Shown: positions 49,401 to 55,689 of the stretch, piece by piece | Position numbering within the stretch: the stretch's first letter is position 1 | How the letters are laid out: each line of letters starts with the position of its first letter | Source of the DNA: Guillardia theta CCMP2712 | Taxonomy: Eukaryota; Protista; Cryptophyta | Length of the DNA: 64,000 bases | Assembly (NCBI RefSeq): GCF_000315625.1 | Contig: NW_005434643.1 | Span: forward strand, 297,698 to 361,697 | Direction: 5' to 3' | Program-made: the position numbers and the translations under genes | The notes under the pieces: generated by a model | The model's input: only the letters and a program-made list of their open reading frames with translations | Database searches by the model: none | What the model was told of the DNA's origin: nothing

Positions 49401-52204
49401 AGGCTCTGCTCAGAGAGAAGCTGCACCCTCACCTCGCCATCTTCATCGAGATGGGCGACGAGGAGGCGGTGCGAAGGCTCTACGGGAGCAAAGACGTCCT
49501 CCGCTTCCCTCGCCCCCATCGCCTGCCCTTCTATCCCTTCCTCGACCCCCGCAGGCAGCGGAGGGAACTGCGAGCGCTGAGACACCTGGGCATTGAGGCG
49601 CCGAATGCCAACCCGCGAGATGAGGAGGGGAAGCCGAAGGCAAAGCCGTCGGGAGAGGAGCTGCTGGCTGCCGCTCAAGAGGCCGAGGCGGCGGTGAAGC
49701 GAAAGATCGAGGAAGAGAACAGCAAAGCGACGGGTCAGCTGGAGGCGATGGCAGCTCGACTGGGAGAAGAAGAGGTGAAGGTTAGGAAGATGCAAGCAAG
49801 CGCATCAGAGGAGAAGCAGGAGCGATGGCTGCAGAGGGTCATAGGTAAGCTCCTTGCTCACCCCCAGTCACTGCTCGCTGCTCCACTTCCTCTTTCTCGC
49901 GAGAAGGCAATTACCCTCCTCGACACTCGCGTCCGCCGCCTCTCCAAGTTCGGCATGGTGTGTCCAGTGAGGCTGCTGGAGGAGGAAGGGGTCCTCGCGC
50001 CCTCCTGCATCAGCGACCTCAACTTCGCCGTCGCCTACGGCCCTCACATCTACCTCTGCAAGGACGCACTTGCCAGGCGCAGCTTTCTTGCCGATCCTGT
50101 TCGCTTTGTGCTGCAACCCCCTCCTCCTCCTCCCGCCTTCCAGCGCATCGTCGTGCTTGGACCCCCCAAGAGCGGTCGCTCCTCGCTAGCAGAGGCGATC
50201 GCTGCTGACCTCGGCCTTGTGCTCCTGACGCCGGCGCGGGTCGTGCGTGAGGTGCTGGAAGATGCTTCTTCGCTGGCAAAGAGGATCGGAGATGAGCTGA
50301 GAAAGGGCCTGGAAGTCTCCGAGGAGCTTCTGGGGCAGGCAATCTGTGCGGCAGCTCATCGTTACCCCGGGTGGGTGCTGGATGGTTTTCCTCGATCGCA
50401 ACAGCAGGCGGAGAAGATGGAGGAGGCGGATGTTGGGGTGACGTCAGTCATCCTGCTGAAGCTCGAGGACAAGGCTTGCAGGGAGCGAGCGACTAAGGAG
50501 CTCATGCGCAGAGGCGAGGACGGATTCTTCGAGAGACCGAGGAGGAGGAGGATCGCAGCAGATCCCGAGGAAGAGGAAGCGGAGGAGAAGGTGGAGGAGA
50601 CACCTCCTCTGTTGACAGGAGAGGAGGCGGTCAGGGAGGCGCTGGCAAGCCTCTCAACAGAGCGAGCAGACAGCGAGATGCAGGCGATCAGGAGAACCTT
50701 GACGAGGGACAAGGACGTGGAGGAGGTGGTGGATGCCAGCCGGAACCGAACGAGCGTGCACCGGCAGGTGCTGGGCGAGCTGAGGCGGGCGGCGAAGGGG
50801 AGGCAGGAGTACCTAATGAGGAGGGAGCTAAAGCATCCAGCACCGCTGGCGGAGCAGAGGCGCTGGATGAGGAGAGAGGACTTGAAGGAGAAGAGGGGCA
50901 ACTTCTGCGTGAAGGAGGAGGATGGAAGTATCATTGGCGATTATTGCCCCGTCGCCTGGAAGCTGGAGGAAGAGCTTGTTCTCTGCTCACCCGACGCGCG
51001 GCTAAGCAACATGCTGGAGGTCGCTGGTCGGTTCTTCTGCGCCTCCCCCAAGCACTTGCTCGAGCTTATGACCTCTCCCTCCTACTACCTTCACTCCCAG
51101 ACGCTCCCTGATCACGTTCCTCGGCGACTGGGGGAAGGAGAGGCAGCGAAAGTCGGAGAGGAGAGCTTGGAGTACAGGGGCTACTGCCCCGTCACTCTGC
51201 TCGATGGCCCAGGAGAAGATGCTGTAAGTGTGCGACCCTGACATCTCCTCCTAACACACGAGCAGGTAACGGGACAAAAGCTGCCTATCCAAGCAGCGCT
51301 GCTCAAGGTGACGAGACGCTATGCAAACCCTCTGACACCCTCCTGCTTCCACCTGCCTTTCCCGCTACCTCATGGCCTCTCGTTGACTGATTGATGGCAG
51401 CCCTCGTATGATGCTCCGCTGGCTGAGCGAATGTACCTCGTCAAGTATCAGGTGCGAGGGCGAGAGGGAGGCAGACAAGAGTGAAGTGAGAGCAACAGGA
51501 CAAGATTTACCGCATGTTGACCGAGGAAAAACTGGATCGCTTCATGCGCAAACCTTGGAACTTTGTCAACCTGAAGCTTCCTGTGAAGCTGGTCCGCCAT
51601 CTCCTTTCCTCCCTCCCTGCTCCCTGACTTGATTGTCACCTGCAGCCTTTCGACAAGCGGCCGCTCGACCTCGCCTCCCTGCCGCTGCCCGGCTACCTCG
51701 AGCATGCCGTGGTACAAGAACTCACCGCTGCTCTCCTCGCTGTGGGTCAGAAGCGACCCAAGTTCCCCGGTGAGCATGTTGGCCGCGCAAGGCTCGCATG
51801 CCTGAGCAGCCGCAGGTCTGAGCTCAGAGCAGTCAGCTCTGAAGCTCCTCGCCCTCCTCCTCCGCTCGCGTAACCGCCGCAACAACACCGTCGACAAGGT
51901 GAGACGCCTCAGCTCGCCTGACCCTGACGACCTAGCAGCGACTCCATGGGATGAACTTGGAGCTGTATGTTGGAGCTTGCGATCTGCTAGTAAGAGACGC
52001 TAAGGTGAGGACAGGTTGGAGAGGCAAGGGGGGAGTGGGGGGAAGGTGGGGGGGCAGAGAGCTGCAGAGCATGTGAGGGCAACAACGTCATGACCAGATG
52101 TGCAGGATGCTCAGCTACCGACGCCTGTACTGGCCGAAAGCGACGTGGTGGAAAGATACTTGAGTCTCGTAGAAGGAGGGCCCAAGGGTTGCGTGAAATA
52201 TTGA
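46459..52204 (+). CDS. AK9: Adenylate kinase 9-like flagellar multi-domain kinase (multi-exon)
   Basis: P-loop-like GKPASGKAT, GAPVTGKS, GALGSGR, GPPKSGRS; GWVLDGFP; five [FYV]CPV (YHS-like) modules each followed by F..[DN]P..[YF]-type segments; C-terminal LPGYLEH...RPKFP.LS typical of AK9. Confidence 0.88.
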
Positions 52205-52271
52205 TACCATGACTTATTGAAATGAAGCCTCACTCTCCCTCCCTCGCCCTCTCCCTGTCTTGACCTCCCTC

Positions 52272-55003
52272 TCAAACTTCTTCGACACGATTTCTACGAC
52301 GAGGAGGACTGAACAAGGGCGACGAGTGCGGCAGGCTCTCTGAGCTCAAGTTCTGGTAGCTCCCGATGCTCGCCATGAACTCTCGCACAGTTTCCAGCCC
52401 TCCCTCGAGCATCCGAGCCGTCGCTTCTCCATGCGCGTGTCCCGCGTGACGCGACAACTCCTGCCGCGGTGTTAGCACAAGAGGGAGCAAGTAGCGGCAA
52501 TGCCTGCAGGAGGTAATCGGAGCGCGAGAGGATGTCTCGGGCAGTCTTATGCTGCTTCTCGCTGAGGCCCGGGTAGGAGGAGCAGCCCTTGGGAACAGAG
52601 AGGAGAAGAGGCACTTGCGTGAGGAACCCGTTGATGCGCTTCAGATCCTCGTCGCTCACGGCTCGCCCACTCCCTCCGACCCTCTGACTCAGCTCCTCAT
52701 CCTCCGTCTGACTGAGAATGTTCAGCTTCATCACAAATGGCTCCACGAGGCCCTCAAACTCCTGCTGCTCTGTCAGTAACCCGCCTTGCTTCCATGCCAT
52801 GCACCTGGTAGAGCCGCAGCCTCCTTCTGTCCCACTCCTCCACCATCGCCTTCCGCTCGATGCCATCGATCCCAATCCCGAAGGATTCAATGGTGGGCCG
52901 GCAGAGCTCCAGGCATTCTTTCATACGGCTCTTCGACTTGATCATCCTCTCTGCATCCGTGTGCGCTCCTTCCTTGACCCGCTGCGCCTCAAGCGCCTTC
53001 ACCTTCTCACTGTCTGCTCCGGGGTCCAACTGCTCCCACCTGCGGTGATACTTCTCGATGCATTCCTTCTCCTCCCTAGTTGCGTACTCCACCTGCGCCA
53101 TTTTGCGGTCGATCAAGTCGCCCAAGGCTTTCTCGGTGATGGCGAAGACTTCGCACACCTCCGTCACAAACTGCCTCGTGTCGTTGCTCACGATCTGCTT
53201 CCAGGGCTCCCAGCGACAGTCGATGTATTGCCGGACGTTGTTCAGCACGTCACAGTACTTGTCGCAGCTGATGATGCTCTCTTCTAGATTGCGGCGGTGC
53301 TGGTCGATATGCTCCTTGACGTCCTTGATCAGCTGCTGGTCCACCTCTTCCTGCTAGGAGCGTCAGGGGCGCGCAAGACCTTAAGGGCTACCTTGAGCTT
53401 GGCGATGATGTACTCCCTCTCGGCTTCAGCAGCTTTCCGTTGAGCATCCATCAAACTATCCCAGCAATGTTTCACGTGCTCGTTTGCTGTGTCCAACTCT
53501 TGCAGAGCTCGTTTGTGGCTGTTGCTACTTGCGCGAGCTTGAGCATGCAGGTGGCTGAGGACGCTGTCGGAGTGGTTCATCTCGTTGAGCACGTTGAGGT
53601 CGTTTTGCCAACGTGCTCGTTGCACCTCAATCTCTCGCAGCTTCCCTTCGAGGCTTGAGATCGCCAGGCTATGGGGAGGCTCGTAGTCGTCTGTGTCCAG
53701 CGGGTTGTTGGGGTCGTAGGCTGCGTTCATCATCTTCTTCGCTTCCGCGTAGGTCTCAAGGCGAGACAAGAGGTTGGAGCTCGCGTCCTCCACTGCTCGC
53801 TCAATCTGCTGCACCAGGTCTAACGCTCTCTGCATCTTCCGCTCTCGATGAGACGCTTGGAACTCGTTGTACAGTGATTGCATGTACGCGGGGAACGAGG
53901 TGCTGTCGTTGTCTACGTTGAGCTTGCTTTGCAGGTCTGCCTGCTTCTCCTTGCACTTGATCATCTGCTGAGACATCACTGGAGGTCGAGCAGCAGCTCA
54001 CGTCTCATGCCTGCATGAAGGGCGTGTTGACGGCGATTCGAATTGAATCAATGATGTCCTTCTCGGCTGCTGGAATCTCAAGCCCCTGCAACTCCATCAC
54101 AACAATGCTGACCGCGACATACACCATAACACGCTTGCATCAACAATCACCATAACACGCTTGCATCAACGAATCACCATAACACGCTTGCATCAACAAT
54201 CACCATAACACGCTTTGAGTGAGAAAAGAAAGGACCTTGAGCTTCTGCAGTGCTCCTTCTAAGTAAGGAAGTGCATTCAAAATGCCTGACTGCCACTCTG
54301 TATACTTGGGATTCGTGGTGTAACTTTTTGCGTTCTCAATCAGGCTGGAATGTGAATTACTCTTGACAAAGAAACCTTGTCAGCATAAATCTTACCTGGG
54401 CAGATGTCGATATTCTACCTTGCCCGTCATCTGCTCCAAATCAGGATCTTCGTACACAGAGGGAGATCGTGACTAACTTGAAAGTAAGATGTGTCCGTGT
54501 TGATATTAGCCAAGGATCGCTTGCAGCAGTCTGCTAGCACATCGTCGTATTTCGACAAATGTGCTTGTCTTTCATAATGTATTAGAAGTCGAGGACAAGA
54601 GGCTTGAAGAACCTCACCGCTCGCTCATCTCTATGGACTTCTTGATGTTTTCGACGTGCGAAGTCCATGATTGAAGAAAAATCCTTTTAGCATGTTCAAC
54701 GGAGATGTTGTCATGATCTGATAAGGACAATGCTCTCGAGTTGGAGAAAGTTGAAAGAGCGTCCGTGGCATGCCCGCTTCTGGGGGGTGATGACCATGCA
54801 GGCAAGGTGTTGCCTGCTTGCAGTCCGGGAGTGGCTGGTTTCTGGATGCGATTGCTGAAGCTGATGCTCTCGTTGGAGAGAGAGGTACGAGAAGGGGCGA
54901 GCTCAGCATGCGAGAGAGGGCGCGAGGACATGCCAGGGCTCTTCTCTTCCACTGGGCGACCATGCGACGCGAGGGCTCGCATTGCAGCACCGGTCTCCGC
55001 CAT
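52272..55003 (-). CDS. Coiled-coil protein resembling the paraflagellar rod (PFR1/PFR2) family (multi-exon)
   Basis: KHCWDSL..., DQHRRNLEESIISCD, ALGDLIDRK, WEQLDPGA, CLELCRPTIE, DRRR occur in the same order and near-identical spacing as recalled PFR motifs; ATG 55003, last exon ends NRVEEV*. Confidence 0.7.
54122..54215 (+). repeat. 26-bp minisatellite (about 3.5 copies), intronic
   Basis: CACCATAACACGCTTGCATCAACAAT at 54122, 54148, 54175 and partial at 54201; no spacers. Confidence 0.9.
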
Positions 55004-55689
55004 AGAGGATCCAACGGTCTATTCGTACCTGGTACCCCCATACCCTTGTACCTCCCATGGACCCTGGTGAGTACCCCTGTTTTTATATAGGTTTGACCCT
55101 TGACCCCTCCCAGACTTGACCTACCCCACCATCACCCTATCTCCGAGCTTTGTACCTGGATTGCCCCTTCCAGTACTCTCTTCCTGTAACAGTCGCCATG
55201 GCGAGGCGATGCTGATGCAGCCGCTGGTACGCAAGCAAGGAGAGGAGGAGACATGAGCGTATCCGAGGGCCCTCGAGGCTTCTAGGGGACGTCATCGGGC
55301 ATAAAAGGTGGTAACGAGCGAGAGAGGTTTCAGATGGCACAAGTTCACTAGCTGCTCTCTAGCTGTGTTATCTTCCAGCCCTGCACGCGCAGAAATCATC
55401 GCAAGCAGTTTGACAGTCATCGGTTGAAGTGAGCAGATAAACATCATGAGCTGGGATTTTTGCAGCCCATCAAAGAATTCATTCGGGAATATCTGTGAGC
55501 CAAGGAGAACTCAGTCCGTCAAACAAGGTTTTACTTCCTACCCTCCATCCTAACCTGAATCGACTTCTTGCTACAGTGCTGCTGTCCATATGTATCCTAC
55601 CCAACATATCTGCAGACCCTTATTGATGACGATTCTTGGAACATGAATTGTCTTTGCTCCTCTGAAGCAAACGTTGAGCAGAAGAGGCG

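Follow-up and report, generated by a model that had tools for sequence, protein, structure and literature searches.

A single-copy gene of the cryptophyte Guillardia theta encodes a helical protein with a probable, very divergent relative of the paraflagellar rod core domain

The paraflagellar rod (PFR) proteins PFR1 and PFR2 are textbook examples of lineage-specific proteins, as they serve as markers of the Euglenozoa and are studied as vaccine and drug targets; to our knowledge, nothing like them is known elsewhere. In trypanosomatids their genes form tandem intronless arrays. The proteins belong to Pfam family PF05149, occur in kinetoplastids, diplonemids and euglenids, and consist of ~600-650 residues that form long alpha-helices. 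According to the literature, neither the rod nor its core proteins occur outside Euglenozoa (PMC2813431; bioRxiv 10.1101/2024.04.19.590284), where the domain bears strong divergence and yet builds rod-associated proteins in the PAR1/PFR3-type paralogues of trypanosomatids, which have been described as a 'divergent member of the PFR1/2 family' (PMC2813431). Here we describe a gene from the cryptophyte Guillardia theta CCMP2712 that lies on the minus strand at positions 52272-55003 of a 64,000-nucleotide (nt) stretch of contig NW_005434643.1 (positions 297,698 to 361,697 of the contig; the whole stretch is referred to as the window, and positions are given in its numbering unless another contig is named). 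The original prediction, made from the DNA letters, had read its product as a PFR1/2-like protein in an apparently non-euglenozoan genome. Our comparisons suggest that residues ~399-576 of the 753-residue product are probably a very divergent homologue of the PFR1/2 core (PF05149) domain. Like the PAR1/PFR3-type paralogues, the protein would be a strongly diverged relative, but the paralogues pass PF05149 and occur in Euglenozoa only.

The resemblance is carried by a series of short blocks, all of which were quoted in the original prediction and all of which are present in the spliced protein. They comprise KHCWDSLMDAQR in exon 6 (residues 397-408; 53437-53472, minus strand) and, in exon 7 on the same strand, IDQHRRNLEESIISCD (residues 438-453; 53261-53308), LGDLIDRK (residues 499-506; 53102-53125), EQLDPGA (residues 529-535; 53015-53035), CLELCRPTIE (residues 569-578; 52886-52915), GIGID (residues 581-585) and DRRR (residues 597-600; 52820-52831). 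For comparison, genuine PFR2 sequences were obtained from a primer located within the Bodo saltans PFR2 gene (PMC9544060), which was converted into a codon-degenerate pattern and used to scan metagenome contigs. This yielded 21 loci, with the conserved PFR2 motif present in the correct frame at 18 of them; the corresponding open reading frames (ORFs) are mostly near-full-length (580-620 residues, with a few shortened), and six of them scanned with PF05149 as a positive control scored 346-355 bits (~E 1e-105). A protein search started from one metagenomic PFR2 gathered 120 PFR1/2 sequences, including those of T. cruzi, Leishmania, Eutreptiella, Neobodo and Diplonema, and 22 non-redundant PFR1/2 from across the Euglenozoa display pairwise identities of 62-85%. 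The consensus of the PF05149-positive PFR1/2 contains E(C/S)WRKIQ(D/E)LER, SQHKKLLELTVYNCD, LGQL(V)YKK and ETFDPNA, followed by ALE.F.PTE..L.QAGI(D/E)F ... RRS. The aspartate of ETFDPNA is located 33 residues after the leucine of LGQL(V)YKK, the same distance that separates D532 of EQLDPGA from L499 of LGDLIDRK in the cryptophyte protein, and the PFR motifs and 33-residue spacing on which the prediction had relied are therefore essentially accurate. The motif order common to the cryptophyte protein and the C-terminal half of PFR1/2 can be written as CW....R, QH..LE.(S/T)(I/V)..CD, I..R(W/Y)(D/E), LG.L(I/V)..K, E.(L/F)DP.A (33 residues past LG), LEL..PT, GI(D/E) and RR....Y.

Direct comparison of the two families produces a single colinear alignment. 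BLASTP of a full-length orthologue of the Guillardia protein (P0035) against one PFR2 gives a colinear match of 465 columns (20% identity, E 0.006), and hhalign returns one register throughout, with a probability that climbs with the depth of the cryptophyte family alignment: 13.9% with 5 rows, 29% with 40 rows and 40% with 45 rows at full length (E 2.9e-4, 175 columns), whereas the domain alone reaches 60% (E 8.6e-5, 136 columns). Supported by hhalign, HMMER and the controls described below, the PFR-core-like region (residues 399-576; 52892..53466 on the minus strand, including a 41-nt intron at 53351-53391) aligns colinearly with residues 322-510 of PFR2, within its PF05149 span of 258-544. 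The 175-column alignment contains just two indels, of 7 and 3 residues, and the residues matched are rare ones (W, CD, LG, DP, P-T and GI), which vary little or not at all within either family. The core cryptophyte group (E 0.0019) and a more divergent subgroup (E 5.7e-4) each match one common PFR region in hhalign.

Controls indicate that this likeness exceeds that obtained with shuffled or reversed sequences. When alignment columns were shuffled in blocks of 1, 7 or 21, the real hhalign score was never reached (0/165 shuffles at full length and 0/400 for the domain, 0/565 overall), and the domain score of 40.6 compares with a shuffle mean of 16 (sd 2.9, maximum 28.6). Reversal of either the query or the target reduced the score to ~20 (E 0.11-0.2), and reversal of both brought it back to 35.8. 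With a hidden Markov model (HMM) of PFR1/2, the exon-7 ORF ranks first among 573 natural ORFs from the window and a coiled-coil locus, scoring 11.0 bits where the next scores 3.9. The divergent family member P0160 scores 15.2 bits, which was attained by none of 1500 residue shuffles and by 1/1500 seven-residue-block shuffles, while the domain of the window protein scores 7.7 bits, attained by 1/1500 residue shuffles; the corresponding counts for P0037, P0001 and P0161 are 7/1500, 6/1500 and 11/1500. Taken together, the likeness stands above chance in targeted tests, yet it falls short of what normally counts as proof and is far under any database-wide reporting level.

A substantial body of results weighs against homology. 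Membership of PF05149 is set by a curated gathering threshold of 23.4 bits, and at E<=10 the profile matches no exon piece, full-length orthologue or divergent fragment; no family member therefore has the significant Pfam match that the prediction had expected, and the Pfam search of these sequences gave sub-threshold coiled-coil noise only (MscS_porin, spectrin-like). A six-frame search of the genome with PF05149 did not report the PFR-like locus, and a whole-genome search with the PFR1/2 alignment gave no candidates, although this first look was too coarse to rank the locus. In an exhaustive phmmer search of 1.84 billion representative proteins with exon 7, no PFR was among the 34 matches. 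Over the 136-175 aligned columns the protein shares just 20-25% identity with PFR1/2, and outside the aligned region hhalign offers a non-significant 26-column colinear hint between the N-terminal halves (E 0.09) and nothing significant between the C-terminal tails (E 0.45). The HMM scores of individual members can also lie within the range of noise, as 97/1500 residue shuffles of P0035 reach its real score, P0161 scores 3.9 bits in HMMER versus 4.2 for its own reversal, and reversed decoys attain up to 5 bits. Moreover, the P-values of 1e-4 to 1e-5 refer to a single comparison that was picked after the likeness had been noticed; once multiplied by ~2e4, the number of families, they come close to 1, which agrees with the hhalign probabilities of 40-60%. 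Finally, both proteins are made of Glu/Lys/Arg/Leu-rich helices, a class that is prone to spurious matches. What stands of the proposed PFR1/2-like protein is thus a likeness in motif order and spacing above shuffled and reversed controls, whereas Pfam membership, overall identity and the N-terminal half do not bear it out. As PF05149 is not matched, identity is 20-25% and the N-terminal halves are unmatched, the protein could be no more than a remote homologue of the PFR core, and judged by these comparisons it is not an orthologue of PFR1 or PFR2. It also differs from them in having an additional disordered stretch of ~100 residues at the N-terminus and a C-terminal tail of greater length, in being encoded by a single-copy, intron-rich gene, and in belonging to a cryptophyte, for which no rod has been reported.

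Remote searches, which used P0035 and the exon sequences in place of the spliced 753-residue protein, added little to this picture. A sequence search of the PDB found nothing, and an ESM-Atlas feature search with exon 7 and P0035 gave no usable match. The AlphaFold2 models of P0035 (mean pLDDT 66.6) and of PFR2 (pLDDT 74.3) are both all-helical, and the former matches the all-alpha, roughly 600-residue long-helix architecture of PFR1/2. Both models contain a 45-residue helix that is bounded by breaks at the DP and GI(D/E) positions of the alignment; these coincident breaks are not independent evidence, because the same Pro/Gly motifs cause them. Foldseek against the PDB and an Atlas shape search with the P0035 model returned generic helical matches only, a result that counts against homology, although such library searches are uninformative here. 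The Atlas negative itself carries no weight, because the control PFR2 model does not find a PF05149 cluster there either.

The searches with PF05149 and the PFR1/2 alignment bear on the genome as a whole, as their empty outcome implies that the alga is without canonical PFR1/2. This absence carries weight, given that PFR1/2 sequences from all over the Euglenozoa share at least 62% identity. The sole PF05149 match in the genome, a weak one on contig C242 (E 0.19), was dismissed as a 28-residue tandem-repeat coiled coil. Its ORF (1548-2591 on the minus strand of C242 24842-28009) comprises at least 11 near-perfect 28-residue repeats (QQERNELEASSKELEGELQTLRQAQAHT), and the opposite strand is open as a repeat ORF too. 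Generic long coiled-coil cytoskeletal proteins such as this one share with the cryptophyte protein a charged helical composition and weak coiled-coil Pfam matches, but the C242 repeat protein scores only 3.9 bits with the PFR1/2 HMM, as compared to 11.0 for exon 7, and is devoid of the colinear rare-residue motifs.

The host and the distribution of the family were clarified by the relatives of the protein. The exon-1 product is 83% identical to a EukProt fragment (P0039) from the cryptophyte Hanusia phi, which places the host outside the Euglenozoa, in agreement with the prediction, and identifies it as a cryptophyte of the Guillardia/Hanusia clade. All 34 phmmer matches of exon 7 are short cryptophyte-like fragments with 38-70% identity, and word-indexed searches recovered full-length orthologues of 596-678 residues that contain no Pfam domain, as well as more divergent fragments at ~45-54% identity (P0001, P0006, P0007, P0010, P0160 and P0161). 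P0001 is encoded on an intron-bearing metagenomic contig on which the CW block is kept in an upstream exon; the intron between the CW-block and core exons (L028 435-690) contains abundant simple repeats of the (GT)n/(CA)n type. An alignment-based family search found no relatives beyond this cryptophyte-like set, in which Hanusia phi is the only named taxon. The 753-residue protein thus founds a small family that so far comprises only cryptophytes and cryptophyte-like metagenomic fragments.

How the likeness arose can be explained in several ways. The protein could be a lineage-specific helical or coiled-coil protein that is not related to PFR1/2, whose likeness to them reflects chance, shared composition and helix-breaking motifs, and which caught attention since many families had been compared with it. 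We consider this somewhat unlikely, although it would readily account for the missing PF05149 and phmmer matches, an hhalign probability of at most 60%, the unmatched N-terminal halves, the scores of several members inside the shuffle range and the bits attained by reversed decoys. It sits less well with the column shuffles and reversals, none of which came near the real hhalign score, with a signal that rises as sequences are added, with the single register shared by two subgroups and the 15 bits of P0160, or with matches that lie on rare, family-invariant residues at conserved spacing and are interrupted by two short indels. Lateral spread, which the prediction had offered beside a deeper origin, would require that a euglenozoan PFR gene was acquired and then diverged very fast in cryptophytes. 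Within the reach of our searches, the PFR-like signal outside Euglenozoa is indeed limited to one lineage, but a drop to 20-25% identity in a family that is otherwise at least 62% identical, eight host-type introns, an N-terminal half devoid of PFR likeness, the lack of intermediate sequences in the protein searches and data that point to no donor make this scenario very improbable.

The likeness in domain, size and helical architecture could also be read as that of a true functional equivalent of PFR1/2, which forms a paraflagellar rod that has gone unrecognised in the flagella of cryptophytes. This is scarcely credible, as those features are all that speaks for it, whereas the genome is without canonical PFR1/2, reviews restrict the PFR to kinetoplastids and euglenids (PMC2813431; bioRxiv 10.1101/2024.04.19.590284), and literature searches for a PFR homologue, a PFR-like protein or a paraxonemal rod in cryptophytes yielded nothing relevant, including no report of such a rod. 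Remote homology of the core domain, which we regard as the probable explanation, leaves room for a broader scenario, in which the PFR core predates Euglenozoa and its diverged cryptophyte descendant builds an unnoticed filamentous structure in the flagellum or root apparatus; as a whole, this scenario is doubtful. The protein has a probably disordered Ser/Pro-rich N-terminus followed by ~650 residues of predicted long alpha-helices; by analogy with PFR1/2, these may self-assemble into a cytoskeletal filament or lattice, and the protein could act as a structural protein in or near flagella. Filament formation and a flagellar location are speculative, and a rod in cryptophyte flagella, like the extra-axonemal structure put forward in the original prediction, is pure speculation.

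The gene itself is well defined. Its coding sequence is bounded exactly by the ATG start and TGA stop, and it is expressed: spliced transcript contigs of three RNA-like runs aligned to the window agree on nine exons, which join into 2262 nt with one open frame. Every splice junction of the gene model is confirmed by the full-length orthologues P0035-P0037, and the gene is single-copy in the genome. Seven of the eight short introns measure 41-51 nt and one 150 nt, bearing out the ordinary short introns that had been predicted. All exons are on the minus strand. Transcripts begin near 55057, and exon 1 (54618..55003, with the ATG at 55003, supported by transcript contigs) encodes the Ser/Pro-rich, probably disordered N-terminal ~100 residues. 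It is followed by exon 2 (54478..54568; joints in three runs, matching orthologues P0035/P0037), the 35-nt exon 3 (54396..54430; transcript joints, with an EYRHLPS junction that is kept in orthologues) and exon 4 (54236..54344; transcript joints). The single 150-nt intron, which is removed in transcripts, harbours 3.6 copies of a 26-nt tandem repeat (54122..54215). Next come exon 5 (54011..54085; transcript joints), exon 6 (53392..53964, residues 233-423), in which the PFR-like stretch begins, exon 7 (52805..53350, residues 424-605), which holds its core (both from transcript contigs), exon 8 (52504..52761; transcript joints, with the orthologue junction LYQ|EFE) and the coding part of exon 9 (52272..52460, with the TGA at 52272-52274). 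Two of the eight introns, located after exon 5 (54010..53965) and exon 8 (52503..52461), are GC-AG rather than GT-AG, and both are spliced out in the transcripts of all three runs. The 3' untranslated region (UTR) runs to about 52200, as judged by minus-strand transcript depth.

Several further observations concern the gene and its surroundings. Across the exon 1/2 junction (window 54538-54622), residues 128-139 read ERQAHLSKYDDV, which is kept in orthologues as ERQMHLAKYEDL or ERQSHLARYEEV and resembles a C-terminal PFR2 stretch, EYRAHLAKQEEV; the pair is not colinear with the main alignment, and HMMER matches it in the window protein and P0037 at noise-level scores. The PFR2 stretch contains the HLA tripeptide that has been implicated in trypanosome flagellar targeting. 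A plus-strand neighbour (window 51900-52272) with a 101-nt GT-AG intron (52003-52103) and a poly-A site at ~52242 is arranged tail to tail with the PFR-like gene, and Logan contigs fuse the transcripts of the two because their 3'UTRs overlap. None of the protein-database searches returned a self-match at or near 100% identity, so a correct full-length model of the gene may be missing from the public proteins of Guillardia.

Should the likeness prove not to be homology, it would illustrate that motif-level resemblance between helical proteins can outlast shuffling controls. If the relationship is confirmed, the cryptophyte protein would extend a known family, as a new and distant variant, to a lineage in which it was not expected, and would indicate that cryptophyte algae possess a cytoskeletal element that has yet to be studied. 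The PFR domain would gain a pre-euglenozoan history and an outgroup that shows which residues are structurally essential, the candidates being the shared W, CD, LG, DP and P-T/GI positions. If the PFR core indeed predates Euglenozoa, then PFR1/2 would be a recruited, pre-existing eukaryotic cytoskeletal protein, as opposed to a de novo euglenozoan invention.
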